Origin: Klebsormidium nitens
Taxonomy: Eukaryota > Plantae > Klebsormidiophyceae
Assembly: GCA_000708835.1 (NCBI GenBank)
Contig: DF237283.1
Location: forward strand, 1-64,000
Length of the DNA stretch: 64,000 nucleotides
Reading direction: 5' to 3'
Shown: piece by piece, positions 231-64,000 of the stretch
Layout of the letters: each line of letters opens with the position of its first letter
Position numbering within the stretch: position 1 is the stretch's first letter
Position numbers and translations under genes: made by a program
Notes under the pieces: model-generated
What the model was told of the DNA's origin: nothing
The model's database searches: none
Seen by the model: only the letters and a program-made list of their open reading frames with translations

Positions 231-2003
231 AAACCCAAAAGCCCTAAGTAGGATACAAGCTCCTGAGACCCTTAGACTTTGTCCCAATTACATTGAAAAC
301 TCCAGCTGACTGACATTCTACAGTGCTTGATATCAGTGGAGCTTATATCAGCTGATTACACTGTCCATCATAAATCTTGACACTTTTGTCTTCATGGATA
401 CATGACGTACTGCAGCGGCCTGTGTTTCTAACCAAACGTGTTCCCTGTGACATTCACACAGTTTTTGCATCAACATAATGCTGGGCATATTTTACGTTCA
501 TTTTGATATCATCTGAAGCTCCCGGTACAGCATAGATGGCGCCTGGCCGGCGTTAGAAAAGTCAAGCCGGTTATATGCGGTTAGTCACAAGGCTCGAGTT
601 ACCCTGATTTCGCAACTAGCACGCATATAACAGTTCTGCCTTAACCTTCGGGTTATGTCAGTCAGGATATCCTATGCAACTCAGTCAACATGGAATCGAG
701 ACCTATCCGTACGTCTCCAAGTTCTCCGGGCCCGGAGTCCCGGTGCGTTGGAAAGCCGCCACGTGTTAAAATGCTTTCGAATCGGACTTGGATTCCCGAC
801 TCCCGAGGACGGCTGGATGTGGTGGTCGCACAACTTCGACATTCAGATACCTACCCGGTATTCTGATATTTCTCAAATATCACAACTCTGACTAACATGC
901 CTGGGCATCGCAGAGTTGCCTCGTGCATGTTGAACGGTGCTCATTGAGCACCTTCGAACCTATTCAACTGCATTTGACCGGCTATGATTTGTTCACGCGC
1001 CAGGCGCTACCCATGCTGGAGCGGACTGAGTTTCATCGTCTAAATGCAATCAATCAGAATGATGATGCAATTCCTTGAAAATATATCACGTCATTTGTAC
1101 ATCAGATCAATGACGCGAGATGAAAATGAGCAAAACAGATGCAACAAGCCATTCTGCCTGTTTCTCTTACTGCAACTTCGTACTGACTCAAATGTCTAGT
1201 AATGGGCAGTTCCACAACCCGGAATCATTCTCTAATGCTGCTTACATGCAGGGCCAGCTCATATATCCCCTCACAATGTCATGCAGCATTTCATACAGTG
1301 TCGTGGCTGCGGGGTGGCTGCTCTACAATGCTAGACCCGAAAAATAATGGTTACGAGCAAGAATGAACAATCTGAGGACACCACGCTCATGAGCTGGAGA
1401 CATGGGACTCCTATACCTAGCGATGGTCGCCGGAGCGCGGGTGCCAAACCGCACGGCGGCCCCTGGGAGGCGGCGACGACCGTTACTTACGAGGAATTGA
1501 CAAACTTTTAACCCGCACGCGGCCTGACCCTTTGTGCGTTTGCGAGGGATCGAAGCCAGGCCCCTCGCAATCATTGACGTCATCATTTCATCACCAAGTG
1601 AAGGAGAAATCCCCACGCCTCAGCCGCTAGACCAAGCGTAGGATGACTAACAATATGGTTACGAGCATATTAAGCATTGGATGCCAGTGGGTGGGCGTGC
1701 ATTGTGATTATTGCCTGATTCAAGGGCATGCCTGTGACTGGCCCCATGTGACTTCTTTCCGTTGTATCATGTGCCCACCAAATTCAGCACAATCCCAGCC
1801 GACCCAATCTTGCACTGTGCTAGTTAGGACTACAAACATATCAAGGTCGACGAAGCTTTTAAACGTGGTCATGGACATCACACACATGACAGTTGGAAGC
1901 CTGTTCGAAACCCTGTGTGGCCTGAGGTCCTGCCAAGTATTAAGGGGTAGAGACGGGCCGTAGGTTCATTGGTGGTAGACACATTTATAGCTGGCCCAAA
2001 CGA

Positions 2004-5000: not shown

Positions 5001-5848
5001 CAAGCAAGGCCCAGCATTGTTAGAAACTTTGCAAGTATGGTTCCTCCAAAACCATCGTGACATTCAGCATGCTTAGTACAACAAAACCAGGATCAAAACC
5101 AGGATTGAAAGCCAGGATTTAAAACAGAATTAAGTGCTGAAGGCCAAGTCTCAGTAACGGAATTTTTCTGCAAAAGTTTATGCAAGTCAGCCAGCAATCT
5201 GGGGTACTGACCTGCGAACTCCATGCCAGCTATCCTCGCTTTCTGTGACAAGGCACAAAACGCACACCCGTAAACCATCGGTCCTGCAGAAAGGCATTTT
5301 GTTTTGTCAGCTCATTGAAAAGTAAGGTGTTCCCTAGAACGAATATGTCTGCACCTCTGCCCTCCTGGGATAAGTACAAGGATGACATTCTGCTTTCACA
5401 CTTTGACTTGTGAGAATTTGAACGGAAGCAACTCTGGTGAATTCCTCTGTGGCTCCTCATGAGCCCCAATCTGGCTTGGAAATTATCACTCTTTCTAATG
5501 ATGTTTTCAAAGGAACGCACCCAAGATACATCAAGCCCAAGGGAGACACACTTTTGCAACCCAAAGCTGTGCAAAAGTGTGATTTAAACATATGAGACGG
5601 CTTCCAAATTATTGCACAGAGCTACTTGACACAACTTAAGCAGCTTGCTTGACACAACACATGAATATCTGTCTGCTCAGGCGAATCTGGTCATCTCCAA
5701 CCTCATGACAGACTTGGCCTCGAGGTTGCCACAATTGATGAATTGAGCACAGAGCCCCACCTAGTACTGGCCCTCTTCCTGCCTCATCGATGCCAAGAAT
5801 ACATGGCTCATTGAACCACGCAGGTTCTTCTCCTGTCCGTCCTTCCAT
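2004..5848 (-). CDS. RNASEH2A: Ribonuclease H2 catalytic subunit A (8 exons)
   Basis: Spliced translation gives the hallmark motifs [13 protein letters not shown]|PMVYG, FA|[42 protein letters not shown]|VTRD, FGSGYPA|[19 protein letters not shown], and a C-terminal [10 protein letters not shown]. Exons: 5761-5848, 5212-5283, 4787-4910, 4499-4586, 4062-4199, 3545-3632, 3038-3161, 2004-2133. All introns are GT-AG and in phase. Confidence 0.96.
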
Positions 5849-7037
5849 TATAACCCCGGAGTAGACTTGTACAATGTAAACCTTGCTCGATGTGCAAGTG
5901 GCGGTACAAGAAGCCGCCCTGAATGACTTGTGCACGACGCGTCGGCTGCTAAAAGAGTAAAGTGCACCGGCCAACTTTGGATTGGTCGTACCACCGTCAG
6001 GTCTGAGCAGGTCTGAGCTGTCGCTCTTTTTAGCTTTAAGATTGATTGTCCAGGTATCTGCTCCGACTCTAAAGTAAAGTTGGCGGGACACTTGACATTA
6101 GCGTCCGTCAGTATGTGTGCAGCCAGAGGGTGTTCACATTAACTTGCCGTTGCCCACTTCTGGTCAAACGGCTGCAATGGTTTCCGTTGAATCTCAATCT
6201 GGCGAAGGGATCTGCCTGCCCAGTTGCTAGTCAAAGTCTGAGAGCGTAAAAGGTCTCAACGTCAACAAGAATGACAGCAGATGCCTCAAAATTTTCAGAG
6301 GTACGAGGGACAGAACGAACACATGAAATTGGGTCCCCCAAAGACGAAAAAGGACGGTGCAACTTGCAGGTCTCTACATTCTAGGTTTCAGTGCAGCTTT
6401 TGATAGCCACCGCATGTGCTCCAAACTGGAATTGGACGATCACTTTTCTTTGCTGCTGCATCCAAAAACTTTGAAAGCAAACCTCAACTGGCAGTGGCAG
6501 TGGCAACTTCAGAGTTTGAACCAAATGGCGGGCTTTGCTAGAACAGGGTTTGGTCCCTACCCTCAAAGGGTTAGGTATTTGGGTTTGTTTTGATAAGAAT
6601 TTGACATAATGTTAGCAATTTTTTTAACCAGGATCTAGTTACCTTTTAACCGGGGCCGGCTAGGCCACAGGGTCATTCCGCTTCAGACTCGCATTTGGTA
6701 CCGCACTCATTAACTGATTTGTTTAACCCGTCTTGCAAATGCGTAATCTGCGGCACCCAAGGGCTCCTGTAAACCGCCGGCGCTAGCTCACAATGAACAA
6801 GCACAAATAAGATCGATCAACACGGCGACGAGTGAGCAGGAACATGACTTTCGTGGTCGCTCGCACTTCCGAGTTCGGGGCGACCGCGTAGCCCCGCTTC
6901 CGAACGCCTGAAACTTGTAAGTTGAACTGCCTCCTTCCAAGCCCTCGTTTTCATCTGAACACCACCTTCCGATCATATCAAGACAGCGCTAGCTAGCTTT
7001 ATCATTTATGGTGTCGACTGTTGTGATGTGGCCATGA

Positions 7038-10000
7038 ATGGCCACCGCCGTCCGTCAGCAGCGTAAGGACGTCCTTAGCACTCCAGCGGCTCAGCGGGCA
7101 GCGTTTCTGTGGAGAGCCGCGAATGCGCTGCTGCCAACTGCGCTGCCTGTGGCAAACAATCTGAGGCAAGCCAAAATGTTGACTGCATTGCAACGTTACG
7201 AGCCCTTTTTCACAACTTTCGTTTGTCTTGCATTTCCTGGCATTGCGTGTTTCTTGAGCTTTTGGAGGGCTACACTACGGTATCTCTACAAGCAAGCTTC
7301 GTGCATGGCATCTGCGTCTTTGCTGTGCATGATGGTGCGCCTCCACAATAATCGTGCTATCTAATGTAAAGGGTCTCATATTGAGTGAAGCTTTTGCCGA
7401 AGTAAGTTGAGCTTGTGCCCTTGTCCAACAATTGAAAGTCTCTCATTTATGAAGAGCAACCCCATGGATCTGGCTTCTTTCTGAAGCACATGGCTCTTAA
7501 CTCTTGAGATGAAAAGCCTTTGCCCACTGGGTTCTACAGCGCCTAGATTTTATACATCTTTCCTCATCTTCTCTTGAACGCTTATGAGCTTTTGCCACAC
7601 CAGACGGTTGCTTGCAGGAAGACTTTTGACAATGCAGGTTTTCTCCATGAAGTCAAGGCACAAATTGAGCGATGCAGTATTGTTATCAGCGAGAGAACCA
7701 TCCTGTGAAACAAGAACTTGGTTGGAAAGAGTTTTCCGATGTCATCTATCATTACCACCATTTGAATTTTTGTGAGGACACCTGCTGAGACATAACTCAT
7801 TTTCTAAGGTTTTGTTTCCATACCCAACTGCCAGTTCAACAAGGTTTGTTTCTTAGAAAACCCATCAAGATGCCAAGGCATATGTCTTGACTTTAATATA
7901 TTTGGTGTGCTATGCACAGATTATATTGTATGCTGAAAGGAGAATTGAAATCTTCTTCTGAACTTTTCATGAAAAGCTGAGACGTTAATGTACAGATTTA
8001 CAGAGCTCTGCAATGAAGGCAAGAGCCTCCTGTATGCACGAGTGAATCACGCCTTACCGCATTTGGAATCTGAACTTTCTCAATGCCGGTTTTGTACAGC
8101 ATTGGGGAAGCTGTTGCGACATTGCACATTTAATATCTCTTTCCGAAGCATGCTCAGTCCAACTGCCCTTTGCACTGTGTCTAATGGCCAATCAACCTGT
8201 CTTCTGCAGCGTTCAGCTCCGTCAACTTTGTGAAGCTCAGTCGGCCCCGCTCCCCAAGGGCGCCGACCAGCTCTCCTGTGCCCGTTGCGAAACTGCCCTG
8301 CTCCCGGGGGTAAACTGCAGAGTCCTCAGTGGCCGTCAAAAAAAGCATCCCGGCAGCCGGGCTGTCCTGTACCAGTGCTCGGTCTGCACGCACTCCGGCG
8401 CTTTCCCGGGCGCGAGCAGAGCCGCGGAAAGGAGCGCAAAAGCGGAGGAGGCGGCCCGAGAGCAGATCGAGCGCTTGGCGTCCGAAAGCGGTCCGAAAGC
8501 GGGCGTGGTTCCGGAGGGCGGGGCAAAGAGGAAACGGGCCAGGGGGAAAGTGCAAAGTCTGAGGGCGTTGGCTCAGAAAGCAGCGAAGCGGCCAGAGGAG
8601 CGGGCGGGGTTGGTTTTGGCGTCTGGGTCCGAGCCTAAACCTTCGGTTAAGCTTGTATCGGTGACTGCGGCTGAGGCTGAAGCTTCGGGTAATCTGGTGT
8701 TAGCACAGAGCTTGAACCCTCTGCAGGAATCACTCTTGGGCGAAGTCTCCACTGTGGTGACATCAGCGGTGACATCAGGGACGGTGGACGCTATCATGAC
8801 AGCTGGAGCGGGGCTTAGCAAGAACGACGACCGCAGCTCAGAGGGGGGGAAGATGCTGAGTGGAACGGAACCCCTCCCGGCGCTTGAGTCTGCCGAAGCA
8901 CCCCTCTTGAAAGTAGCCCCCGAAGGTGAACCCAAGACGGCCGATGTTTCATTTGAAGATCGACAACCTGCGCTGTATTCCTCTCTGGGTGAAGCGGCCG
9001 CAGCGCAGAATTGCACCGAGACGCCCCCGCTCGAAGTCCCCCTGCCCGAGAAACCCACCCCCCTAGTTCCTGCAGAAACCGCAAAGCCTGACACAAAGCC
9101 TGGGGTGTTTTTTCCTGCCGAAAAGGCCACACCGCAGCGGACAAAGCGTCCTGCCTCTCGGAGTGGGGGGCGGTCGGTTCTGGGGGCCTCCATGGCTGCG
9201 AAAGCTGGTCAGGGGGGGAAGGCAGCCCCCAGTTCTGCGAACCAGGGGGGCGATGACGAAGAGTCGCCGTACTCGAAAGTGGCCTCGCAAAGGGAGGTTG
9301 CAGAGGAGACTGCGCAACAGGGGGGAGGGATTGGCGAGCAACTTCAGAGTGGGGAAGAGGCAACTGCAGAACAAAATGCAGCTGGATTGCAAGAGACATC
9401 TGCCGGTATCCAGAGCAACAGGGGGGCCGAAAAGGGGGTGAATGAAGGGGCTTCGCAGGCAGCGGCAAAGGAGGAGAGAGGTGGCAGGGAAGATGTCCCA
9501 ACTAGCGAGGCTCTGCTCAAGCCCCCTGTCGCCCACCCTTCTGAAACCCCTGCTGATGAGCCCACAACCCAAAACGTTCCCCCTCCCAGCGAACCAGAGA
9601 GCAGCATCGACACTTCACTGCGCCGGTCCGCGCGCAAGCGGGGGGCGCCGAACGGCTCCGGAGCAGCCCCCCAGAAGGACGACACGGCGACCTCGTCCAA
9701 GGGGGCGGAGACGCCCAGTAGACGGTCACTTCGAAACGGGGGGGCTGCTTTGGCAGAGGCGACGACCCCCCTGAGGAGGTCCACACGGAGAGCGGGGTCT
9801 GTGGAGCCGGATGCGAAGAAAGCTGTGGCAACGCCGGGCAGGCGGTCAGGTCGGACTGGGGGGGTCGGCGAGGCTGGTGCGGAGCCCCCTGTTCCAAAAC
9901 CAACTCGGCGGGTGGGCAGCAGAGGTGTCTCTACTGAGCCCGAGGATGCCCCCCAGACGAGTGCAGCAGGGCGGGAAGAACTAGCGGCGGCTGAAAGAGG

Positions 10001-13000
10001 GACTGATGACAAGGAACAGGAAGGGGACGGAAAAGTGGAATCTGCCCTTGGAACGATAGCGGAGCTTCTGGAAGCGCCTTTGTCGACCTTTGACGCTTCC
10101 GAGGGGGTGGCGAGCGCCCTGGAAGTTTCCACCCAGGAGACGTTTGTGACTGCGACGCAGGAGAGCGTCCCCGGGGGAGAGTCTCAGTCGCAGACAAACA
10201 CCCCGTTGGAGGAAACGGAGACACAGCCTGTGCTGACGCAGGAAACAGATCCTGAAATGGAGGAGCTGACCCCCCCAGAACGAGAAGTGGGTCCGAGCGA
10301 GCAGGAAACAAGTCATACGGAGCCGGAAAGTGTGCCGATTTTGGCAGAGGAAGACATTCGGGGGGGGCCATTGGAAGGTGGGGTGTTTCCGAATACGGCG
10401 CTTGCTGAAGAAAGGACCGGAAGGGGAGCGGCGGAAGGAGGACTCGAGAAGGAGGAAGGAACGAAGGAAGACGAAGAGATGGCGGATGCAGATGTGCACG
10501 AACGAGAAGGAAAGGACGAAGGGGGAGAAAAGAGGGAAATGGAAGCCGTCGATTTGGGGGGGGCTTTGAGGACTGCGGAACAGGTCGCAGAGGAGATAAC
10601 GGTGGGGGAGATCGAAATGGGGGGCGGCGAACAAACGGCAGCAGAGAAGAGGGACAGCCTGCTGGAGCATGACGTGGAAGTGCCAGCTACGAAGCGCCGG
10701 AGGGGATCCCCCGAGGCGGACGATTCAACCGCCCCCACAGAAGCGGGCGTTTCTGTGGCCGAGCAAGAGCCGGGTCTCACCCAAACGATTGAGAATATGT
10801 TCACCGCTGTGGGGGGTTCTCCGGGCATCGAAACGGGGGGATTCTTTGCCACTGATTTTGGACCCCCTGCCGCAGCTGACGAGGTTCCAGTGGGGCAGAA
10901 CGGGCGTGAGACAGCGGACGGGGCGGGGGCCATCTCTAGGCTGGCCTCCGCAGAGTCGGCTGACGTCATGATGGCCTCTGCTGACGTCGAAACGCCCTCT
11001 GCTGACGTCGGAACGGCCGCTGCTGCCGTCAGACCGGCCTCCGCCCGTCTCCCGCCGCAGGCGATCGTCATCGAGGACGCCCTCGCGCTCGCTGACGGGC
11101 TGCTGACGTCACCGACGCTCGGCCTCGGGATCGAGGGCCACTTTCCGCCGACGCCGACGCCGGAGGGGCCGTGGAAAACTGCCGCAGCTGCAGGTGAACC
11201 TTTTGGCCAATCGCATCCGTCAGATTTGCAGACCAACTGTCAGCTTGGAACGCTTTATCGTGGTGGCCTTAGTAAGCGTGCTAACTGCAGTTACTGGTGA
11301 CAAGACTGACAACTTTTAAACCTTGTAAGCTTAGTTTCAAATTGGAACCTTAACCAGGTTTGGTCAAGGGAATGTGGCACAAATTTTGATATCGGCAGCC
11401 GACAGTACCGTATGAAAATGTCGTCTACGTCTTTGTCCATGTCAGTCAACGCAATACAGATCTGCTTATACAGTAGTGCTTTCTAAGACGAAGCTACTGG
11501 TATGTGTTTGCGCCTCATGCTGCAGTGTTCGTTGACACGAGAAAGTGCAACTGGGAGCAAAGAGAACTTAAGTTTGAAGAGAAGCAATGGGCATCTCTGC
11601 AGGTTGACGGAAAGGCGGTACAAGGTTCGCATGGAATCGACTAGGAGCAATCCTAGGCCTGACGATATAAGGATAGTCCAGGCTTTTCCGCAACAGTATT
11701 TGGACACATTCTAGAATCCGTTCTGGACAGAATGGACAATAATCCGGTCTTGCCTCCGCCTGAAAACAAGACACCTTCGATTCTTCCACAGGTGATGTCA
11801 TCGACACCCACGAACGCGTCGACGCTGACGTCAGCTTCGAGCCGGGCACTCAGCCTCTCGAGCAGGAGCACGAGGGCGGCGACACGGACCTGGAAGACGC
11901 TGACGTCATCCCGGATCGGGAGCGCGGCGCCCCATCACACACGCGCCGNNNNNNNNNNNNNNNNNNNNNNNNNNNNNNNNNNNNNNNNNNNNNNNNNNNN
12001 NNNNNNNNNNNNNNNNNNNNNNNNNNNNNNNNNNNNNNNNNNNNNNNNNNNNNNNNNNNNNNNNNNNNNNNNNNNNNNNNNNNNNNNNNNNNNNNNNNNN
12101 NNNNNNNNNNNNNNNNNNNNNNNNNNNNNNNNNNNNNNNNNNNNNNNNNNNNNNNNNNNNNNNNNNNNNNNNNNNNNNNNNNNNNNNNNNNNNNNNNNNN
12201 NNNNNNNNNNNNNNNNNNNNNNNNNNNNNNNNNNNNNNNNNNNNNNNNNNNNNNNNNNNNNNNNNNNNNNNNNNNNNNNNNNNNNNNNNNNNGGGCTGCC
12301 TGCCGAAGCAGAGGGGCAGTTCGAGCAGCGCTCTGGCGGGGGGGACCGCCAGCTGGCGAGCGGAGCGGATGCGACCGCCCCAGAAAGGTGCGTTGAGAGT
12401 TTGATGTCGGTAGCAACAGCCGCCTTTGCGTGAAAACCTTGCTTAGCAAGGGGGTTTGGGTGTCTCCAACGGCCTGCGGCGGTCGTTTCTATTGGTTCAG
12501 TCTCGCGGCATACGAGGTCATTCTCAGGTCCCTGTCTCTTGCACTCGATGATAGGCCAAAGGACATTGTCAATGCGATGCATACTGGATCTGCTGTCAAG
12601 ATTCAGGTCGCCTCTTCTACGAGAGCTACGAGCCGACCCAAGCTCATTGGGCTTAGCAAACGTCGGGAGTGGGCCAAACCCACTCTGCCTACTCTTATCT
12701 ATCGTTCACCAGCTCTTTCCCCCTTATGCAGTGCTCTGTGGACGGATAATCCAGACGCTCGCGAGGATCTTAATGGGCTGTCGCTGCAATCGCGGGCCGC
12801 AATAGAGAACGCAGCTCGTGTTCAAGCGGCTCAAAGGTACGTGGCAAGTCGGGAAGAAGACTTGCAGAACCTGACAGTGGATGTAGCCCGAGTAGAGGCG
12901 AGAAACAGGAGGTTAGAGGCGGAAAAGGAGAATCTAACGGCGGAAACGGCGGAGCTGAGGGCGGCCAGAGCGGAAACGGAAGCGGAAAGAGAGGCGGAAA

Positions 13001-15175: not shown

Positions 15176-15283
15176 ATCCAAGGGGTGCCTAGAGACCATT
15201 TTATTAAACTAGCTCACGCGGCGCGGCGCCGTCCAATGGGTGCCAGCAGAGCTAGACCATTCTATTAATCTAGCTCACGCGGC
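15176..15283. repeat. ~61-bp-period degenerate tandem duplication in the convergent intergenic region
   Basis: GACCATT(T/C)TATTAA(A/T)CTAGCTCACGCGGC at 15194-15222 and 15255-15283. Also CACTAGCTAAAAGCA at 14883-14897 and 14931-14945. Confidence 0.8.
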
Positions 15284-15789
15284 CGGCATACATCATGTGG
15301 CGCGCACAACAATGCACCTAGGCATGCATGCATATGCACAACTGTCATCAAATCTCGACCGGACCGTCTCGCTGGCATAATGCAGATTCCGGGCGCACCA
15401 GAGCCATATGCATTCTGCCAGGACTAGATCGGATGCACCAAGCCCGCTGCGCACCTGACTGCCACCCCTAAGTATGCACAATGATGCGTCAGTTCTAAGT
15501 TGTGTCTCGAATTATTTGATCATATCCGTGAGTCGCGCTGCCAAATAATTAGTAAAAGGGCAGGACTCTCTTACTCTAGTACACGGAGCAACATCTGCGG
15601 GTCGGTGGTTCGGCCTTTGACAAAAGGGATATGAGCACAGTTGTTCAGAGTTTATACCACGTAGTCGGTGACAACGATCAAGCTTCTGTAGTTGCTGACA
15701 GCTTTATGCCTAGCAACTCCAGTTAAGAATCGACGGTGCTTGCTTGTCTACCTAAGAAAGAATTGTGGCTATGGCATCAATGTGACGCT

Positions 15790-47900: not shown

Positions 47901-50674
47901 TCGTGCTCTTAAAAGTGCCCACCAACAAGGCTTAAAATCATTTGTACCCGACAGGGTGCCGACGGGAGCACAGGAGAAGCTGAGCCTTAAACAATCTTAT
48001 ATGGGCATATGAAAAGCCCGTTCGTCACCGAGCCATGCAGTTTCGAGCGCGATTCCTTGTAGCGTCTTTCGTGCATTTGCCGTTTGAGGCGACGTCTTAC
48101 AGTACGCGTCTTTGAATCCTGGTAATTTTGTGGGAAACTCGATTTAAGGGGTGTTTTTGGCTAGGCCCGCCAAAATTTCTTGCCATCTCGTCAGCACAAC
48201 TCTCGGTTTTTGCGCTCGGAAATGTTGCTCAAAGGCATTTGCTTATCAAAATGCACCATTTTTCTTGTCGCTAGAACGGAACACAACATAAAAGAGACAT
48301 GGATGTTACGAGGAAGGTTCGAGTTCCTCAAAACCGCATTCATCTTTTGAACGTAACGAAAGAGCGCGAAAGTAGAAATGTAGAGCGCGCAAACGGAAAA
48401 CCCAGAAGTTGTCCGCCCTTCATTTCCAGGACGCAATGCAGCGGCAGACCCTGGTTCCCATTCACTACTACATGCGCGGGAGGGATCCCTCTCGGACGTC
48501 CGTTTTGGACCTGGCCTGCGGCACCGGACGCTTTCTCACCTTCCTCAAGGACAACTACCCGTCCGCACGGACGTACGGGGTGAGTGTTCGTGGCTTCGAC
48601 GACGACTCCGAATGGATTGCCTTGAATCCGGGTATATCGTCGAAGATAAAAATCATATCTTGCAAACATTTGATCCTGGAGAAGCATCTTTGGAAATGAT
48701 TGCCCGTCCGAAAGTAAGGCACGGGTGAGTACCTGTTTGTCGGCAACGAAAGCTCGCCCGCTCGAAACCGTCTGTGCATAGAGAATCTTATCGAACTTCG
48801 GCTTTCGTCAAAGGGAGTTCTCGGGACGGGTTGGAAGGTGGATCAGTCCCTGAGTCTGAATTGATCAACTGGTTGTGTCGCACCATTCTACTTTGCAAGG
48901 CATCAGAGTCCAGTCACGAGTGTTACTAGCAGAATTGGCCCCATCTCTTGCAGCCTTTCTCCAACGTTATATTTTGGAACAAGTTATCCAATTAAAGGCC
49001 TGCTATCACAGGTGGATCTCAGCCCAAATTACCTGAAAGCTGCGGAGGAGAACATGGATTACTTCGAGAGTGAGCTTCCTCGGTCCATTTAAGGTCTTCA
49101 TCATTTTAGTTGTCAAAGGAAGTTTCAGAGTAAGCTGGGTCTCTTGCAACGCAGCGCTTTCACGACCTTTTTGTGAATTGCAGCCAGATCAAAGTTACAT
49201 AACAGATGCGGTCTCATCCTCGCAAGTGAACTTATAATTTTGTTGGTCCAAGTAGTAAATTTGAGGCGTCATCATCCTTTGAAAGATCGCAGATGGTGAC
49301 GTCTTCGTCGTTCCTTCCATCAGCACGAAACTTGAAACCATCAAGAGGTAACTGAGTGCTGGAGAAAATTCGACGTGCTGTCGTTCTTGCAGGATTTGAC
49401 ATGCAAGTCAACGGCTTCCGAAAGCTGTCGCGGCCTCGCTATATCCAGGCTAGCGCAGAAAGCCTTCCATTTGGGGACAGATCCCTGGACGTAGTAAGTT
49501 GCATCCGATTGAACGGGCATGTTCTTATCCCTCCTCAGTCCAGCACACTTACCATTATGTTTGCAGCCAGATTGGTTCCCCATTCAATTGTTTGTCCTAG
49601 GAACTAAAAATTTACATTCCTCGAACACTACAGAAGCAAGTGTCCCGAGGCGGCCGAATTTTACGCAGTCTTCGATATAATCAAAGTGAAAGGATCAGTA
49701 TTACGAAGGTTGCAAATGGTTCAAGTCACCGAGCCATACGAGCTGCCCATCGTTTAAAGATGTGCAATCAGGACATAAGCGAAGGACGATCACATGGTCA
49801 ATCTCGGACTAGTATGGGTATCTTTGGGGAAGTTACTAGGGCGGGTACACATGCGGAACAGTTAGACTCGAGTTGGGAGAGTAGTGTAGGTCTACAATCT
49901 ACAAACTTATGAGTCATTCCAAAACTGGAAATCGTTTTTGTCAAGGTTACGTGCGTCTATCTCTTTCACGAGCTTCCCCCGGAGGCGCGCCGCGCGGCCA
50001 TCGCGGAGGTTTCGAGGGTTCTTGAACCGGGCGGCATCTTCGTCTGGACAGACTCACTCCAGGTGAGCGGTTAATACAGGAAGTTTTGGCTGCTAACCAG
50101 GCTCTCTACCAGAGGGTTATTGGATAAGTAATCGGGGTTTATCCTTGATCAGCGGCTGGTCAACGCCCAAGTCTGGCTACTGGACATGTAACCAGTTTCT
50201 AAACAGCCCAGAACCGTCCTTGGTTGAGGGCCAGTTAAACTTCTGGGTAAGGCGATACACACGAAGCGCTTGCTAAGTGAGGTAAATATGGTGTCAGATC
50301 TCGCTTCTCTTTTACAAATCAGGTTCACACAGGGTCATTTCGATCTGGAACGGCCCTGGGAAAACACCGTAACGTTTTCTTGCAATTGTTGCGACTCACA
50401 GTATAATCATATTGCGAGCTGTGGAATTGGGTCTCGTTCGTGAACGCTCCAAAAACTGCATCGAAAGCTGACGTAAGCACGTATCTTGGTGCGCCCAACC
50501 GGACGTCTTCTTGTGCAGGAGGGAGACCGTCCAGAGAGCGCGCCGGTGGCGGCGCTGTTCCGCGCGCTGTTTCACGAGCCGTACTTCGCGAGCTTTCTGC
50601 GCGCGGACTTTGAGGGGATGTGCGCGGCCGCGGGGCTCGCGCACGAGGCCACCATCCTGGCCCATCTCTCCAAG
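44928..50674 (+). CDS. Class I SAM-dependent methyltransferase (cyanobacterial/algal type with YPxYY..FHxQ..GW motif), probably plastid-targeted; contains an in-frame TAA; 3' end uncertain
   Basis: Exons: 44928-45662 (Ser/Ala/Arg-rich N-terminus), 46257-46402, 46626-~46755 (GIYRAPYD), 47389-47508 (PEYYLQHFHWQPGGWL), 48430-48580 (VLDLACGTG, motif I), 49011-49070 (VDLSPNYL), ~49393-49492 (AESLPF), ~49946-50061 (VTCVYLFHELP...RVLEPGG), 50518-~50674 (FHEPYF). Confidence 0.85.
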
Positions 50675-51976
50675 GCAAGCGTTTTGATGTTTCAGGGTTC
50701 TATCACCATTATTTACAAGCTTTTAAGCTGTTTCCATATCAGGCGGGCTGCAGATCTGAGAAATGGCTGGGGGACAAGTCTCTTTGCTATCACCAGCGTC
50801 CATCTTGTGAACGTCAACGAATTGGACGGTTCAGATCTGATTTGTCAGATATCATACCAGAGGTCCTGATCACGTGGTAGGTCCTAGATGCTCACAGCTG
50901 AAGCCGAAATTGCACTCTCAGACCGGCTTCATTAGCTGAAGATCGGACGGCTGTGACAGCGTTTTGGCCATCGGAGCGGGTCTGCGGTCCGCCTGATATT
51001 GTTTCATGCTCACCGCCAGCAAGTTCGGAAAGGTGGCTTTTCGTCTCAAAACCTGCCCTCCAGGTGATCTGGATGAAATGAGTCCACTCGGTTCAACGGT
51101 TTGGAAAAAAGTACTTGATATCTAATGTATCTTCTCGGAAGCTCTAGCGTGAGGATGTGACTAGATGGTGTAAGAACTTGTCGCGGGGTCTTCGAGGACG
51201 AAAGAATGGATCCGAAACATTCCTCCCTGACAACGTATCAGTATCCTTTTTGATGTAGGTACTGTGCTTCCGAAAACAGTAACATTTCATAGCGTCATAA
51301 AGACATGGATCGCGCGGAAAATCGACTAACGTCGAGGGCTTGAAAACTACCTCCCTGTGAACAGATGGCGTAGCATGCTGAGGAACTTTGACGTGTCAAA
51401 ATGAGTGACTAGTCTCCAAAGATCCCCCGACAAATGAAGTTTAGATGTACATAAGATGAGTCCAAGCTTCGTATGTCTCGTTCTCCTCAAGTTGAAGCAG
51501 TTGCACCAATCGCACACAGATTTGAGTACGTGCCACTATTATATGAACACGCCAGTCAACGAATAGCATGCTGAAAGGATCCCTGAGGACGTGCGACTGT
51601 AGCCACCACGATAACCTATAGCTTCGCAACTTGATGATTGGCGCTACGGTACATGCAAAGCCCTATCGAGAGCACTAGTCATTGGAAAGCGATGCTTCGA
51701 CTTGTGGATTTTTCGAGTCGTGTGCGATTGTCTTCAGACGAAGCGCCGGAAGCTGCTGTTGGCCCATCCTCCACCGAAACGGATGCGCAACTCAGCGACA
51801 TACTCCAATCATTTGTTCGGCACTGCATTCATAAAACCCATGCGCAATGGGCATTTCTACGTTTGCACCTGCAGATGTGAAGGTTTAGCAAGACCCACGT
51901 TCACAGGTGAAAGATGCCGTTTCAGTTATGCTATGTGAAGTACAACCACAAAATCTGAAAAAGCCTGCTAAAGTGC

Positions 51977-54195
51977 TCAATCGGACTCTTTCTTCTCGGC
52001 CACTTTCTGGACGAGCCACCCCATGCAGGGCGCGACTCCCCCGTCCTCAGTCACCCTCACCCCGGGTAATCCGGCGATAAGCTGACAGTCGCTTATGGCC
52101 CCATGGTTATCGAGCTTGAAAGGGCACTTCACATAACCCTCGGGAATGTCGCTCGCATCGGTTCTCCCCCGTGCAAAGTCTGCCTTTTGCAAACCGCCAG
52201 TGTATGGGAAGAAAAAGCGCACCCATCCCTTCAAAGAGTACTGCCCCCCCGACCCGTAGGATTCTCTTGTAAGGACCTGGCTCCACCATACGCTATCCGG
52301 TCTGCCCTCATACGTGCTCAGAAGCTGCTGCACAACGGTCTCCAAATGGTCCAGCCACCAGTCGAGGCCGATATCCAATTGGCGGAGGCCACGTGTCTTC
52401 TCCAGGAGGCGCTGCCAGTCTTCTTGGGTGCCGTGCAGGGTCACCTGGTTCGGACGAGAAAGGTTTGGATAATCAGCGTACACCAGCGAGAAATGACGTC
52501 ACCTCGGGGGTTTTGAATTCACGAAGAGAAGGCTTGCGAGCCTGCAACGAAACTGCCCTTGCAGTCTCAGCATTCATGCCGCCAGACTCTCTTACCAACT
52601 AGAAAGTCTTGTTTCCAACAATACGAGAGCCAAAGCCGGAAACTCAGAACTCTCATAATCAAATGTTGCTTCTGAGTTCTAAGGAACCTAGCCCGACGCT
52701 TTCGTCGGTTGAAAGGAGACGTCAGCTTCCCCACAATTGAGCCTTTCGACAGAGTCATTTCGAAAATACCAACGAAACGAAGGTAAGACCTCTGGACCAA
52801 ATACGATCCGCAGCCGATCGGTTGAAGGCTTGCCGCTTATTTGTAACATGATTGAGAAAGCTTGAATAAGTAGTGGAGAAATCCACCTGGTAGAGGAGCA
52901 CTTGAAATGATATAAGCTGATGAATTCCGATAACTTCCTGATGGAAGCCATGAAGCAGTACTTCAGCTACAAGTTTGAGCTCTCCTGCGGAATCCCAAAG
53001 GCAAGTCGTCTCACAGAGGCCAAGCAGTCTTGGAGATGACGTCAGTGGTGGAGAAGTCGTTCGTCAGCAGCTGACCCGCCCCGGCCTTGACCTTCTTGTC
53101 CAGCTTCTGTGTGATAAGGGCGACGCACTTGGGCCAATCCAGCAGACGTGAGTCGCCTGCGCCAAGGAAGAGGGTGCAGGACGTAATTACACATGATTCC
53201 CAAATACTCTTCCTCATTGACTTTTTAATCCAATAAGGATGCCAAACTGTTCACTTGATGCGGTCTTCAGCTGACAAGGAAGCAATGCATATGGTGGTCA
53301 GCATAGCGATCCATTGTCATTGATCAATAATAAATCCCGGCAAAATTTTACATGCAGTTCGACATTTGGCAAGTAGTTCCTTAGATGTTAAGGCCATGTG
53401 GAGTCCTTGTTGAACAAATGTTCCTTCACTTTGAACAAACACATCCGATTTGAGGACGCAACTGTGCTGCAGACATATCAGAAGCAGAGTAAAAGCCATT
53501 AAACATCTTGATATTCAAAACGTAACTTTGTCAAGATCATCTACCGCTCTTGTTCACTTGTTTTCAGTCGCAGATTCATGAGCGTCAAGAAAGGTGATAG
53601 TAAGCGAAGATAATCATATTGAATCTTTGTCTGGCAATATTCGAAAATTTCAGTTCGAGGCTCGCCTGGAAGGAAGGAAACATTCACGTTGACCGCAATT
53701 TCCTCCTGCCCGTCATGATCAACAAACACCCGCCGGTATTTCTCCGCGTTCTCTCCGTGCTGCAGATGTCTGCTGACGCCCTGACAGATCGTCAGCCACA
53801 CGTCATCAGGTCTCAGGTGCAGGTGCAGGTGTCCACTGTACGCCTTCTCAAAGGCTGCCAGCAGACCATTGTTGCAGCCAGGCCTCTTGAGAACGTCCCC
53901 TGGCGAGCAGTCAAAGATGACGTCTTCCTGCTTCGGGCGCAGGAGCGAAATCCAGCAATTCTTCAGAGGCTCAACAAGGCCGGCGCACTGCCTTGTGTAG
54001 TCGCTCTTTGCGCGGCGGAGCTTTCCCTTCCGCGGCATATTTGCGCCACTCCTGCAGGTCAAACTTTGGTCGCTCGGCAGTGACCTCCGTGCAGGGAGTG
54101 AGAGTATCCAGCTCGATGTCGGACGCCAGAACTTGGGTGCTCATTGCTTCCTCTATTTTATCTGGCGCACTGTCTGTAGAAATTGGGTGCTTCAA
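51977..54195 (-). pseudogene. DUF4419-family gene disrupted by an intragenic inversion (or misassembled)
   Basis: DUF4419 motifs NGLLAAFEKAYSGHLHLHLRPDDVWLTICQG...AEKYRRVFVDHDG, DWP...NDFSTT, and VTLHGTQEDW...WW...GSG...LKGW are on the minus strand. The connecting LMEAMKQYFSY...CGIPK lies on the PLUS strand at 52938-53000. Confidence 0.8.
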
Positions 54196-55250
54196 GAGCT
54201 CGCGAATATGGTTCCATGCACCACAGAAACCGTCTTATTCAAAACAAAGTTGACTAAGGAGAGAGCCCGGGGAAAGGGTAGGGTCAATTTTGGATTAGGG
54301 TGGGTACGACTGCGGAGCGCGTCGTTTCTTGCTTTAGATCTTTTGGTTTGTTCGATCTCCCGAGCAAAATCCATTGTCAACTTCAAGCACCTCTTTATCT
54401 GCCGAAGGGTGACGTACACTGACGTTACGGGTACGTACCAGGGCTGCAAACCCGGCCCGCTCTGATTGGCCCGACTCGACCACTGCAGCTGACGTGTCAC
54501 GCAGTTACTGGTTACTGAAGACCATCAATTCCTGTACGCATCTGTTATCATCCTTGATTTTTGCGCCCTGACAGTATTGGACGGTCCAGATCGCCTCTCG
54601 CAGAGAATTGACGGCCAGAGAGCGTAAAGAAATGTGGCGGCAGATCTGATGAAAACTGCAACATGACGACTTTCCTAGCCATAGTATCACTTCCTGCCTT
54701 TACTCCAGTAATGTGCACCGCTTCAGCGTGTTCAGTACGTACGTCCAGAACCGATTTGCATCCTTGTGTATGATGGTTTTTATAACAATAATGTACTTGC
54801 ACATTCTGATTGATCCCAATATAGTATGCTTTTTGAAGGCGACCGCTGGCAACACATGCGAAGCGGTGGCAGTACCAGCAGACAAGTTGCATCCTTACAT
54901 ATCTGAGTAAGGCAAGTGAAACATACGTTTTTGACATGGGTCCTCACTCGCAGTTATACTTATCCTTGTTATAAATACAATGCTGTGGATGTAACTTCAG
55001 CCTATGATATCGATTTTGGGCGCTCATCGGTACCATGATGTGAGGGGTCCGGAAGAAACCTCCCTACGAGGTTTTTGCAAACGGCAGATTTGCACCATGA
55101 AAACCCTGTTCAAAGCAGTGCACTAATTATTGCTCCTACTTAACCACTTCTTAATCAGTCCCGTTCCCGAGGCTGCTTTTTCCGCTACTCCGACCCGTTT
55201 CTGCGAACATTGACAGCAATTTGGAGCGCGCTAGCATCCACTCGCTAATC

Positions 55251-56966
55251 CTAAACTCCCGACGTCCAGTCCCCGGGCGACAGCCGCTCGTCGAAGTCCG
55301 CCAGCATCTGCTTATTCAGCTCCTCGTTGTGCTCTTCCGCCGCCTTATGCTCGAGCGCCTCCTCATACGCGATCGTCTGCCTGCGCAGCAGCAACGTCAG
55401 CACGGACACCGCCAGGCTCATTTGGACGGGCCGTCCGAACAGCGTCCGAACAAAGGATGCGCCGAGGTTTGAGAGTTTAGCGCCGCGGATGGCCTGGCCG
55501 GCGACACGTGTCAGCGGGAGGACGAACGGCGCCGCCTGGAGAAGGGCCCGCCAGGATTGTGTAAACAGTTCCCACTTGGGGATTGGCAGCGGAAGCGGAA
55601 CGCCGAACGGCAGCGGAAGGAGCACCACGCGCGAGAAGTCCAGTGTGAATGCGTACGGGTGCAGGCGCCAGTTGAGCACCGGGCAGAGCGCGCATAGGAA
55701 GTCGGCCGCGAAGCGCGCGTCCCAGCTGACGTCACAAGGGGGAAGGCGCGCGCGCGCCGCGCGCGCCATGGTCTCCAGAAAGCGGAAGACGTCCCACAGG
55801 AGACTGGCTGCGAGGGCGGCGCAGAGGGCGACCTCGAAGCGAGCGGCGAGGGGGCCGTGGAGCCACGTGGCAGCGTTTGCTTGGGAGAGAGAGAGGGAGA
55901 GGAACGGAAGGGGCTGCGGGAGAGCGAGAAAGCACACCGCGTTGAAGAGGAGTACCAGGGTGTCGAGCGCGAACGGGTCTGTAACGCAGTAGTGGAGCGC
56001 CTTGAGCTGCGTTACGAACTGGGTGCGGACCGTGATGGCGTACAGGATGCCCGTGAGGAGGGGCTTGAACACCAGCTGCGCAGCCCCCCTGAAAAGATAC
56101 GCGGGGAACAAGTTTGAGGGAGGGGTGCTGCTGGGGGGGTCAATTGGGCTGGGCAGAAGGAGGGGGGGCTTGAGCTGCGACTTCCCTGTGATGGATTTGT
56201 AGTAGAACGTCTTCTTGCGCTTGGGGTCGAAGAGGTTGTGCCATTCTGGAGGCAGGCGTTTGTCACGCGGCTGGAACTGCCCCGCCTCTGCGGCCCGCTC
56301 TAGTTCGTACCAGACGATCACCCGCGCGGCAGTCAGCCAGGTCAAGCAGGTCAGGATAATGTGGGGAAACCACGTGGCGGCCTCCAAGCTGAAGGAGAAA
56401 CCGATGAAGCAGGCGAACAAGAGCCCGGTCACAGACACAGCCGACCACAGAACAGTCAGTGGAGTGGGGCCCCATTTGGTCGGGGGTTGGTGCCCCGAGC
56501 TGTCAGAGTCCTTTGGGCTTGTTTGGCCCAACCCCTCAAACGCTGAACAAGTCTGCTTGACCCTCTTCGGCGTGTCGGTGGTGCGGATGCTAGGTGACGT
56601 TAGGAAACGAGAAGCTGACGCGGAGCTTGGACTGATTTTGTTCAAAGTGTGAAACCTTGCGTCCTTTGAGCGGCTTTGGAAAAAGAGAGCTGGAATGCTG
56701 CCAGCAGGCGACAATGAAGCGTCACGCGAGCAAGAAGACGTTTTCGTCATAGATCGTGTATGCCTCCCCCTTTGGATGGTCTGCTTGACGATCTGCGGTG
56801 GACAAAGATCCCACTGCTTTGTGAGAGCGTGTTGAGAAGGGGGCAAGCGTTCTGCATATTGTTGTGCGCTAATGCGTGCGCCACTTGACTGCGGCTGCAA
56901 ATCATGGTGCAACACTGCAGCCTGTCCCAACGCAATGCTGCGTCTGCTGATGGATGCGGCCGCCAT
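55251..56966 (-). CDS. Intronless multi-pass membrane protein with a WW-like domain and a transit-peptide-like N-terminus
   Basis: 571-aa ATG-initiated ORF. The N-terminal ~140 aa are Ser/Thr/Arg-rich. Several hydrophobic segments are present. LPPEWHNLFDPKRKKTFYYKSITGKSQLKPP at ~56162-56256 fits the WW pattern, with the second Trp replaced by Leu. Confidence 0.75.
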   Translation of the reverse strand: MAAASISRRSIALGQAAVLHHDLQPQSSGARISAQQYAERLPPSQHALTKQWDLCPPQIVKQTIQRGRHTRSMTKTSSCSRDASLSPAGSIPALFFQSRSKDARFHTLNKISPSSASASRFLTSPSIRTTDTPKRVKQTCSAFEGLGQTSPKDSDSSGHQPPTKWGPTPLTVLWSAVSVTGLLFACFIGFSFSLEAATWFPHIILTCLTWLTAARVIVWYELERAAEAGQFQPRDKRLPPEWHNLFDPKRKKTFYYKSITGKSQLKPPLLLPSPIDPPSSTPPSNLFPAYLFRGAAQLVFKPLLTGILYAITVRTQFVTQLKALHYCVTDPFALDTLVLLFNAVCFLALPQPLPFLSLSLSQANAATWLHGPLAARFEVALCAALAASLLWDVFRFLETMARAARARLPPCDVSWDARFAADFLCALCPVLNWRLHPYAFTLDFSRVVLLPLPFGVPLPLPIPKWELFTQSWRALLQAAPFVLPLTRVAGQAIRGAKLSNLGASFVRTLFGRPVQMSLAVSVLTLLLRRQTIAYEEALEHKAAEEHNEELNKQMLADFDERLSPGDWTSGV

Positions 56967-58113: not shown

Positions 58114-58121
58114 TTTCCCGC
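58114..58121 (+). promoter_or_regulatory. Canonical E2F site TTTCCCGC upstream of the DEL start codon
   Basis: Exact match. A second WTTSSCSS match (ATTGGCGC, minus strand) is at 57746-57753. Short motifs can occur by chance. Confidence 0.4.
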
Positions 58122-58946
58122 CGCTGCGCATGAGGTCCAGTGACTTTGCGGTCGAACGCTCAATTTGAGTCGATCATCAGAACAGGCCAGCTGTGGAGAC
58201 TTCTGAGAGACTCCTCACAGCGAGCAAGCAAGGTTAGTTCACAATTGCATCGGTGTGGCAGTTTAGAAGTTGCTGGCATCAGGTGTGCACTGATGCTATC
58301 TTCACTGCTTTGGGTTTGTCGTCTGGAGTAGAGAATTGGATCTGGTTCAAGCAGAAGGATATTGTCAGCTATTGTAAGCGCTCTTTGGGTTTGATTAAGA
58401 GACTAACGCTGGCTTCAGGATCATGACAAGGACTTTTCAGCTGCTTTGAAGTATATCAGCAGTCACACTGCTTGGCCATGCAATCAAACATGCCCATGTG
58501 CTTCATTCATGTCTGGACTTTCGAAAGGTTTGATGAGCGGTGCTTATGATCTTTGAAAGGCCAGAGCAAACTCAAGTGCTCTTGGTCTGGAAATGCTGTT
58601 TCGGTGTCTCAATGCATTCTAACGGGAAAGTTTGAAAGGTGGGGTTTACATGGTTACGACCACCTCCATGGAATCGTCCTATGAACAGGCTGTTTGACAC
58701 AGGGCACGGATTGTGTTGAACACTTGCTGAACAGGATGCTCAAGGTTCTTCCACACAGTTTGCCTGTTTAGGTGGATCAATGCTGATGGTCTCAAAGGGT
58801 CAAGGTGATGTACTGTCTGAACAAGCTTTGGGTCACTAGTTCACAGAGCAGCATCGGCTGCCACTGATTGTGCCAGAGCTATCAGATTCCCTGAGGTTTG
58901 CTTCCTTTTTCCTCACAGGTTGCTTATACGCTAATAAAGGAGCCAG

Positions 58947-61900: not shown

Positions 61901-64000
61901 CAAGCAAACGCCCACGAAAAGCACCAAGCAACGTGGCCTAAGAATCAACTCTCACAAAGTCTCTCATTCCTGACGTCTTTTCCAACTCACAGGACCTTTG
62001 TGAGGACATCCTCCCCGCCTCTCAGACGGACTCCTTCCACGGCTTTCCGGTCTCTCAACCGGATTCCGTTCCCGGAAGCCTGGCCAGCAGCCGGAACACC
62101 ACCCCGTGCAACAGTGACGACGAAGAGGCCGACGTGAGAGGGCCCCGGGGGGGCAAGGCCAAGAAAAGCGCAGGTGGGAAACTTCCCTCCGGAATGTGCT
62201 TCATCCTTGAATTTGAACGAAAACGTCATCGAAGCAGCCTAGATCTTCCACTACGAAGTTGGAATTTACTCAAGGATCAACGAGAAGGAAGAAAAGATGG
62301 AAGAGTTGGATTGAAAGGAAAACAAGAACGAAAGAATTTAATAAAAGCACCGATGGGAAGAGTTCTTTGAAAAAGAAGAAAAGAACATACAGAAGATCTC
62401 TCTCCCAGAACAGGACCAGTTGTAAGGTCCTACAGGAGACCGTGAAACGTGATCATCCGGTCCCCGCCCTGACAGTGGAAGGACGAAGGCTCTCAACGGA
62501 AGGCTTGCCGCTCAAACCAGAACCTAATCTAGGAGCCCCTGGCATACGCCGATGAATGGATTTCCAAAACATGGAAACGTGATATGTGCTGCCTTGCTCC
62601 GGAATCGTCATTTTTCTATAAGTTCGGCTCCACTCTAACCCCATCTTCAATTCCCCACTTGCAATCCTTGAACGGGGTAGGGTGGGGGGAAGGGCGCTCC
62701 CTCCTTGGTGCGGCTTGTTCATCAAGCTGTTCACAGAGTTCTAGGAAGACTGCCGGCGATATGCCGGATGAGCGTGGGGATAAACAAAAGGCGCGAAAAG
62801 CAGGACCAACGCAAGTCGCCGAAAGATCAGCCAAGCGACCTGACTTCAACAGAGTCTAAAACAACCTCGATCCGCATTGCAGGCGACAGCCGGCGCGAGA
62901 AGTCGCTGGGCGTGCTGACGCAGCGCTTCGTGGGCCTGTTCCTGACGTCACACACGGGCGTGCTGTCGCTGGACCACGCGGCGGAGGTCCTCCTCAGCGA
63001 CTGCGACGCGACCGCCAAAACCAAGAGTGAGCGCGCGCGTGCGGACCTCTTGCGATCAACGTTTTTCTGAGTGCTTTCTTCGTCCTCTTGCGTGCGCTTC
63101 GTTTGGTCGTTTGCGCTTCCTGGTCAGGGGATGAAAGTGGTCTCTCCAAGTAGTGCCTCGTCCAGAACAAGCGCCCGTGCAACGACTTGTCTCGTTTTCC
63201 TTTGCTTGCTTGTTCTTCTCTTGGTGCTCCGAAGCTGTTTCTGCCTGTGATTTGAACGTCTTGAGAAGGGGAACCTCAATAAGCAGCTCTCGGCGCCCCT
63301 GATCGCCAAACGGTTCGTCGGTTCCGGCTGGGCTTTGTGGATTGCTTGCATCCAAAGATGACAAAAATAGAGGACACAAATAGTGTTCCCATTGGTCAAT
63401 GAAGATTTCTCCTCACAGTCTCAGACGCTGAGGTTTCTGCGGCGAACCACGAATACTTTAACTCGATCACAGATTTTCGAGTGAATGCTAAACCATTTTC
63501 AAATCTGGAATACAACCAGGGACACCCCAAGCCGATCATAAACCTGCCCTCGAACTTCACCGTTTCCAAGTTAGGTTCCTTGAACTAAAGCTTTTTCAAA
63601 GTTCTGATTGTACCAACGATTCTCTGTCCTGCAGCCAAGGTTCGTCGCCTGTACGACATCGCCAACATCCTGGCCTCGATGCGCCTCATCGAAAAGATCC
63701 AGGTTAACAAGGTCCGCAAACCCGCCTTCCGGTGGATCTGCGCAAACTCCCGCATCGCGCTCAACTCGCGCGCCGATAACCTCAAGTGGTGCGTCCCCTT
63801 GCTACGCCCCGAAGAGCTCGCCGCGGGGGGGTCGAAACGCCCGGCGGACGACCCCCCTTCGGTGGAACCCGCAGAAAACGAGCTGCCGGCAAAACGGTTA
63901 AGGACGGGTTTGCAGAGGGTTAACGAGGAGGGCGTCGGGGCGCCGGGTGCGTTTGAGTGGGTTAGGTCGCTGACTGGAAGCGGTCGGGGGATTGCCCCGG
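58947..64000 (+). CDS. DEL: Atypical E2F (DEL/E2F7-8 type) with two DNA-binding domains; 3' end beyond the window
   Basis: DBD1: YCRKEKSLGLLCDK|FMSMY...LDDAARKL|GVERRRIYDIVNVLESMQ|VVVRKAKNRYTWHG. DBD2: DSRREKSLGVLTQRFVGLFL...SLDHAAEVLL...|TKVRRLYDIANILASMRLIEKI...RKPAFRW. All splices are in phase and GT-AG. Confidence 0.95.

Follow-up and report, generated by a model that had tools for sequence, protein, structure and literature searches.

The DNA studied here, hereafter the window, is the first 64,000 nucleotides of contig DF237283.1 (NCBI GenBank assembly GCA_000708835.1) of the green alga Klebsormidium nitens. Its gene density is high, at about one gene per 3–5 kb, and among its recognisable genes are an ABC1-kinase gene, a DUF4419 gene, an exon for an E2F/DP winged-helix domain and several long open reading frames (ORFs). 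Scattered through these genes is the palindromic octamer TGACGTCA, which an earlier note, made by reading the letters alone, had likened to the highly iterated palindrome HIP1 of cyanobacteria. A pattern search found 21 exact sites in the 64-kb window, and these are the 21 positions listed in the earlier note, each matching exactly and none extra.

The excess of TGACGTCA is a real DNA-level signal and apparently an undescribed one. The octamer ranks first in frequency among all octamers of the window, and the words that rank next, among them GCTGACGT and CTGACGTC, are extensions of it. Across 100 dinucleotide-preserving shuffles it occurred 0.80 times on average and at most four times, while Markov models of orders 0–3 predict 0.9–2.4 occurrences. 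The previously estimated expectation of about one site falls within this range (0.8–2.4 expected against 21 seen), and the excess persists at all four Markov orders, the kind of null under which the earlier note had allowed that it might vanish. Among the 256 palindromic octamers, TGACGTCA stands alone at the top (P = 3e-13 against the order-3 Markov model). Its enrichment is about 9–24-fold, rising to at least 45-fold with a GC flank, and its density is about one site per 3 kb. Spacing, which had been proposed as a check, is roughly Poisson within the 64 kb (variance/mean 1.5 in 4-kb bins), and the longest TGACGTCA-free stretch, 14.6 kb, is not significant. The 12-mer GCTGACGTCAGC is present twice, at 11824 and 16993, as had been noted. 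We found no paper in the library searched that joins TGACGTCA and Klebsormidium, and a literature search on intragenic or genome-wide TGACGTCA excess in algae, or on iterated palindromes in eukaryotes, returned nothing relevant; the earlier note likewise knew of no description in a green alga.

To place the sites relative to genes, RNA contigs from four public runs, belonging to four different studies, were mapped to positions 15200–21100. They define a seven-exon stretch of the minus-strand ABC1-kinase gene, with GT..AG introns, and match sites 19954 and 16995 with no differing letters. Being reproduced letter-perfect in independent runs, these two sites are no assembly artefacts. Elsewhere, Pfam identified the E2F/DP exon around 62943 and the DUF4419 exons around 52–54 kb. 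Exact protein look-ups of the long ORFs of the window returned no record, so that the gene structure is our own reading of the sequence. Segmentation by codon usage, good for long ORFs and poor for short-exon genes, was excluded from the compartment statistics. Overall, 16 of the 21 sites are coding (five by inference only), two lie in proven introns, one lies in an inferred intron, and two are non-coding and unclassified. The individual sites are as follows.

1575–1582, strand unassigned: TGACGTCA, non-coding and unclassified; no convincing open frame; downstream of the last recognisable exon of a minus-strand RNase H2A-like gene.
2423–2430, strand unassigned: TGACGTCA, non-coding and unclassified; 3' untranslated region or intergenic.
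10961–10968, plus strand: TGACGTCA in the long ORF 8184–11300 (Rpr2 domain); read xxT-GAC-GTC-A, ADV.
11104–11111, plus strand: TGACGTCA in ORF 8184–11300; read xTG-ACG-TCA, LTS.
11826–11833, plus strand: TGACGTCA within the 12-mer GCTGACGTCAGC; probably coding, ADV, in an acidic frame entering an assembly gap; provisional.
11901–11908, plus strand: TGACGTCA; probably coding, ADV, 41 nt before the gap; provisional.
16995–17002, minus strand: TGACGTCA within the 12-mer GCTGACGTCAGC; ABC1-kinase intron, about 133 nt upstream of the acceptor; RNA joint 16861/17434, and intronic contigs with 0 differences.
18631–18638, minus strand: TGACGTCA; ABC1-kinase intron, starting 13 nt inside it after the donor AAG/GTGAG (slash at the exon end); RNA joint 18142/18652; ABC1 Pfam match in the adjoining exon.
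19954–19961, minus strand: TGACGTCA; ABC1-kinase exon 19840–20065; read xxT-GAC-GTC-A, ADV.
34522–34529, plus strand: TGACGTCA; conserved exon, DDV; same octamer at the orthologous place in a relative (see below).
37536–37543, plus strand: TGACGTCA; PHD-finger ORF 36488–39424; read xTG-ACG-TCA, VTS; unalignable in the relative.
39076–39083, plus strand: TGACGTCA; PHD-finger ORF 36488–39424; ADV; kept in the relative.
39747–39754, plus strand: TGACGTCA; ORF 39691–41772; ADV; the relative has TGTCGTCA.
40469–40494, plus strand: two copies of TGACGTCA, at 40469 and 40487, offset by 18 nt within a tandem duplication of that length, both VTS; in the relative, TGATGTCG stands at the place of 40469, and 40487 has no similar counterpart.
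41361–41368, plus strand: TGACGTCA; ORF 39691–41772; ADV; the relative has TGACGTTA, a synonymous difference.
45568–45575, plus strand: TGACGTCA; ORF 44712–45683; MTS; coding by open frame and codon score only.
52494–52501, minus strand: TGACGTCA; probably in a DUF4419 intron, about 50 nt upstream of the acceptor inferred from sequence.
53037–53044, minus strand: TGACGTCA; DUF4419 exon, TDV; weak DUF4419 match (profile positions 64–106), in correct order between neighbouring exons.
55727–55734, minus strand: TGACGTCA; WW-domain ORF 55251–56966, CDV; in the relative the coding (minus) strand reads CGACCTCA and the plus strand TGAGGTCG, a non-synonymous difference.
62943–62950, plus strand: TGACGTCA; exon for the E2F/DP winged-helix domain; LTS.

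The earlier note had placed the octamer in introns and in intergenic DNA. The RNA contigs bear out the first part: the proven ABC1-kinase introns (4.0 kb) hold two TGACGTCA sites where 0.07 are expected (P = 0.002). As to the second part, 1575 and 2423 are non-coding and unclassified, and none of the 21 sites of the window could be assigned as intergenic or promoter. Within long ORFs the sites lie 56–2920 nt from the start, with no bias toward the 5' end.

A few of these placements deserve detail. For site 16995, an acceptor only 20 nt away was considered and found not to be used, since the RNA places the real acceptor at a distance of 133 nt. For site 52494, a coding reading as VTS was rejected: read in the frame of the downstream DUF4419 exon, the motif supplies a TGA, and some 50 nt further along, where the DUF4419 Pfam match starts, there is a good acceptor, which makes the site most likely intronic. 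The assembly gap at 11949–12292 touches no TGACGTCA site, and its two sides have no overlapping sequence. From the end of the site to the gap there are 116 nt for 11826 and 41 nt for 11901. An acidic frame enters the gap from the left, still open, and the coding call for both sites is provisional because the gap length is only an estimate. The RNase HII match at 5639–6091 is weak.

Some further observations concern the same genes. The three ABC1-kinase sites (16995, 18631 and 19954), one exonic and two intronic, share the longer plus-strand word TGACGTCAGCGCC, with unrelated wider flanks. Low-depth contigs in two RNA-like runs (X5 and X6) lie inside the ABC1-kinase introns at 16200–17960 and may represent pre-mRNA before splicing, intron retention or carried-over DNA; one X5 contig carries a G>A difference at 16555. 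The long single ORFs 8184–11300, 28436–31429, 36488–39424 and 39691–41772 encode low-complexity, purine-strand-biased proteins of 700–1000 codons, which have a small recognisable domain (Rpr2, PHD) or none and show 58–72% amino-acid identity in the relative.

Protein coding does not account for the excess, as the earlier note had argued. Coding nulls were computed on the 22 kb of long ORFs, which hold 10 TGACGTCA sites. Shuffling synonymous codons within each ORF, with the protein and its codon usage kept, gives 0.6 expected sites and a maximum of 5; shuffling codon order gives 0.2. Even a di-codon Markov null, whose pair counts are already inflated by TGACGTCA itself, gives 2.0 (P = 5e-5), so that the excess also survives a test that had been named beforehand as one that might abolish it. 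The bias is visible in the spelling of single dipeptides of these ORFs: GACGTC spells 16 of 36 Asp-Val pairs (17% expected), and ACGTCA spells 7 of 44 Thr-Ser pairs (4.4% expected), TCA being a rare serine codon here (11%). Only two coding phases are possible, xTG-ACG-TCA and xxT-GAC-GTC-A, since a third would put a TGA in frame on whichever strand is coding. The 16 coding sites use both (6 and 10 sites), and all of the previously described readings (ADV, DDV and V, L or M followed by TS) were seen. The excess thus outlives the synonymous, codon-order and di-codon nulls, and it spans both phases and introns.

Repetition does not account for it either. The 120-nt flanks of the sites are no more alike than chance (best ungapped identity 41%, mean 28%), and a dispersed repeat or transposon family carrying TGACGTCA, which the earlier note had considered as a possible source, is ruled out since flanks are not shared. 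For the same reason a transposon footprint or target site was rejected. A recombination hotspot was rejected as well, because a hotspot word should erode rather than accumulate, and so was RNA structure, given the two-fold symmetry of the word. The sole pair of sites with shared flanks is 40469/40487, where, within 40450–40500, the 18-nt tandem duplication ggTGACGTCAgcaga makes two adjoining perfect sites. Immediately upstream is CGACGTCA, a copy with one mismatch, so that 45 nt of coding sequence contain three perfect or near-perfect sites. Local duplication is therefore one route by which sites arise.

The excess belongs to the full palindrome. Of 28 occurrences of TGACGTC, 21 continue with A, and of 48 occurrences of xGACGTCy, 21 have T and A as the outer letters. 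One-mismatch variants, which the earlier note had called common, are indeed present, at 49 loci when the twelve classes are pooled, but with about 22 expected (order 1) they are enriched only about 2-fold, against about 24-fold for the perfect word. TGATGTCA/TGACATCA, the word that results when the central CpG undergoes a C-to-T change, is the most enriched of them, with 8 loci against 1.7–2.4 expected.

Preference extends outward from the octamer and downward to its halves. A GC dinucleotide stands on at least one side of 16 of the 21 sites, and GCTGACGTCA was counted 18 times against 0.1–0.4 expected (45–180-fold). Relative to the direction of transcription, the GC flank lies upstream in 10 cases and downstream in 7; this lack of transcript-strand bias points to a signal in DNA rather than RNA. 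The half-site GCTGACG without the next T is enriched about 1.9-fold. GCTGACGT without the following CA occurs at 12 further loci against 2–4 expected (3–6-fold), mostly one-off sites (GTCG) or C/G hybrid boxes (GTGG, GTGT). Such a stepwise, steep rise from half-site to hybrid to perfect palindrome is the pattern that the binding preference of a putative dimeric protein would be expected to leave.

A second palindrome, GGGATCCC, is also in excess, at 8 loci (10703, 16037, 30613, 33018, 33347, 36695, 41384 and 48482) against 0.7–1.2 expected (P = 7e-7, with 256 palindromes tested). GGATCC occurs 15 times, and in 8 of these it is flanked by G and C. Long ORFs contain six of the eight GGGATCCC loci, in all three phases, where the synonymous shuffle predicts 1.7 (P about 0.002). 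GGGATCCC has no CpG and is often extended to AGGGATCCCT; no excess of it was found in the contigs of the relative described next.

Comparison with related DNA shows that the excess is shared, and only some of the positions. Protein searches for relatives, including one with the four-site ORF, found one related lineage only, in a Joint Genome Institute (JGI) metagenome, and two scans of metagenome contigs for further relatives found none. Three overlapping pieces (L001, L003 and L006) were joined into a contig of 32.7 kb, collinear with the window at 23.2–42.3 kb and 55.3–56.3 kb and 67–84% identical in DNA in the matching blocks. It holds four TGACGTCA sites against 0.36–0.93 expected. Two more loci of the same sample, L002 and L005, hold one and two sites; they were found through proteins 40–42% identical to the WW-domain protein of the window and may come from another organism. 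Pooled, these contigs hold 7 sites in 75 kb (P = 8e-5 at order 1 and 2e-3 at order 3), significantly fewer than the 21 in the 64 kb of the window (P = 0.002). The excess in related DNA, about 75 kb of contigs from one metagenome, is thus real but weaker than in the window. A significant excess in a related alga implies that the maintaining force predates the split.

The earlier note had proposed following site gain and loss across orthologues, and the comparison with this one relative revealed turnover. Sites 34522 and 39076 are kept; 39747, 40469, 41361 and 55727 have one or two differences; two further window sites lie in unalignable sequence, and two TGACGTCA sites are private to the relative. 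Some differences are purely synonymous (41361, GTC against GTT) and others change amino acids. As a baseline, any 8-mer in a well-aligned context is perfectly conserved in 13% of cases. Sites thus turn over between relatives beneath a shared excess. In the same alignment, about 13 kb of the window (42300–55270), holding ORF 44712–45683 and the DUF4419 gene, lie between the orthologues of two neighbouring genes that are about 2.5 kb apart in the relative (L006/L003, 22769–25291), indicating that either one lineage has gained an insertion or the other has undergone a deletion or rearrangement.

Taken together, these facts require a force that favours the perfect double-stranded word all along transcription units, one that bends codon choice and is too weak, or too indifferent to position, to fix single sites. 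TGACGTCA is the canonical cAMP response element (CRE) or C-box, the site of CREB/ATF and of plant basic leucine zipper (bZIP) factors, including TGA factors, with an ACGT core. Our leading reading, which we hold tentatively and rate as somewhat short of probable, is that a putative dimeric bZIP-type protein reads TGACGTCA along transcription units and that weak selection acts on the density of sites. It is ranked first because of the exact CRE/C-box sequence, the two-fold symmetry that reaches into the flanks, and the graded excess of hybrids and half-sites. We infer that a protein reads the site, that the reader is a bZIP, and that selection and not repair bias maintains it.

In the mechanism we propose, TGACGTCA, at its best as GC-TGACGTCA-GC, would be a signal on double-stranded DNA, and a dimeric sequence-specific protein of the bZIP class (CREB/ATF/TGA type) would read the perfect form. 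Transcription units would retain roughly one perfect site every 3 kb, with no distinction between exon and intron. The maintaining force would be weak and would govern how many sites there are more than where each one stands; it could still prevail over synonymous codon choice and, in protein regions under loose constraint, sometimes over the amino acid itself. Single sites would decay, most visibly by C-to-T change at the central CpG, as new sites arise elsewhere, and related species would consequently share the excess and only some of the positions. Possible roles for the putative binding are the marking of genes, an effect on chromatin or methylation, and a supporting part in transcription. 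Klebsormidium is reported to have bZIPs of the TGA type, whose binding core is TGACG (PMC6508501), and CG methylation of active gene bodies has been published for K. nitens (PMC5890265), with which the CpG-transition product as the commonest decayed form is consistent.

Several observations weigh against a bZIP reader. The perfect word is strongly preferred, 16 of the 21 sites are coding and there is no 5' bias, whereas transcription-factor sites are usually degenerate and near promoters. A comparable but weaker pattern is seen for GGGATCCC, a word not known to be linked to bZIPs. Conservation of 2 of the 6–8 alignable sites does not significantly exceed the 13% baseline (P = 0.18–0.28) in this small sample from one relative. 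Finally, turnover and a density that differs by lineage fit a neutral drive equally well.

Under such a neutral molecular drive, a context-specific bias of repair or gene conversion, perhaps tied to methylation of the central CG, would turn near-matches into perfect TGACGTCA genome-wide, and the sites would need no function. We regard this as possible, though doubtful. Exons, with 10 sites in 22 kb, and proven introns, with 2 in 4 kb, have similar densities; the octamer is written in both coding phases; and sites turn over, with conservation not significantly above baseline. The difference in density between lineages (21 per 64 kb against 7 per 75 kb), the drop from a 24-fold excess of the perfect word to a 2-fold excess of its neighbours, and the presence of a second, unrelated palindrome in excess speak for it too. 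A drive of this kind was reportedly once proposed for cyanobacterial HIP1. The neighbour spectrum, however, runs counter to its best-known form: very-short-patch (VSP)-type repair of deaminated methyl-C predicts that TGATGTCA/TGACATCA should be depleted, and it is instead the most enriched neighbour (8 against 1.7–2.4), which disfavours the VSP-like version of the methylation-directed repair suggested in the earlier note. The graded enrichment of hybrid boxes and GC-flanked half-sites would also be unexpected from word-specific repair, and we know of no eukaryotic enzyme of such octamer specificity. For HIP1 itself, published evidence favoured selection over biased repair (PMC5861425).

We consider it improbable that the sites are ordinary CRE/C-box elements in promoters or enhancers, regulating nearby genes in a compact genome. 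The sequence is that of a canonical bZIP site, and with about one gene per 3–5 kb some exonic sites fall within 1–2 kb of the start of a neighbouring gene. Yet 16 of the 21 sites are coding and three are intronic, none is assignable to a promoter, those in ORFs begin anywhere from 56 to 2920 nt from the start, and conservation, which would be expected of such elements, extends to only 2 of 6–8.

If anything harder to credit is a signal at the RNA level, in which UGACGUCA in pre-mRNA would serve as a splicing enhancer or as a site for an RNA-binding protein. All 19 classified sites do lie in transcribed DNA, and of the intronic sites one starts 13 nt into its intron and one is separated from an inferred acceptor by about 50 nt. 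An RNA signal would, however, have no need of perfect two-fold symmetry, and the flanks too are symmetric and free of transcript-strand bias; most sites are far from exon ends, with 19954 more than 100 nt from both and 16995 133 nt from its acceptor. That the excess is an artefact of composition, codon or codon-pair usage, low-complexity proteins, a repeat family or assembly is very improbable, for although ten sites lie in GC-rich ORFs encoding low-complexity proteins and one pair stems from the 18-nt tandem duplication, every null (Markov 0–3, synonymous, codon-order and di-codon) was exceeded, flank identity reaches at most 41% against a mean of 28%, sites occur in introns as well, and contigs from independent runs reproduce them.

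If the signal proves real genome-wide, an alga near the root of the land plants would carry tens of thousands of perfect bZIP palindromes in its genes, and its codon choice would be constrained by a DNA-level code laid over the protein code. It would also be the first highly iterated palindrome described in a eukaryotic nucleus. A bolder proposal, which we rate as unlikely, would see in TGACGTCA a candidate eukaryotic counterpart of such palindromes: a dedicated, possibly methylation-sensitive dimeric protein would read words kept every few kb of transcription units, despite their cost in codons and amino acids, as a mark of "gene" or "self", for example guiding gene-body methylation or chromatin, or shielding genes from transposon silencing, with GGGATCCC maybe a second such word. 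The central CpG ties the signal to gene-body methylation, the function of which is itself debated. The choice between selection and repair drive, a question of 30 years for HIP1, becomes tractable in this alga, which is cultured and has a published methylome and RNA-seq. New from this window are the RNA-proven intronic sites, the di-codon null, the neighbour spectrum, the flank and hybrid gradient, the conservation test controlled by a baseline, the lower density in the relative, and GGGATCCC.

Among known systems, the closest in appearance is HIP1 (GCGATCGC). Both are palindromic octamers, over-represented many-fold (15–300-fold for HIP1; PMC5861425, PMC4390886). Both lie inside and between coding regions in any frame, both have a methylatable core, and neither has an established function. 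TGACGTCA differs in being another word, at a lower density (1 per 3 kb), in a eukaryotic nuclear genome with introns. For HIP1, cognate orphan methyltransferases and a periodicity of 10–90 kb are known (PMC5861425, PMC4390886), and selection was argued from conservation between genomes (Xu et al. 2018), biased repair being judged less likely (PMC5861425). HIP1 sites are conserved above control words, whereas TGACGTCA sites do not rise significantly above the 13% baseline. The analogy drawn in the earlier note therefore holds for over-representation, palindromy and frame independence, but is not significantly borne out for positional conservation (2 of 6–8), the argument for selection on HIP1.

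The likeness to the CRE/C-box is of another kind: the sequence is identical, its palindromy suits a dimer, and half-sites and hybrids are in graded excess. Classical CREs, however, are promoter elements, commonly degenerate, of which a genome has hundreds to thousands, whereas here most TGACGTCA sites fall in coding exons and introns, with a strong preference for the perfect word and with codons chosen to form it. Chi (GCTGGTGG) and the DNA uptake sequences are bacterial "self" words that occur once per few kb across genes, at some cost in codons, and are read by a dedicated protein machine. TGACGTCA resembles them as a short exact word with a few-kb density across genes and a codon cost; it differs in that Chi and the uptake sequences are asymmetric, depend on orientation and serve bacterial machines of recombination and uptake.

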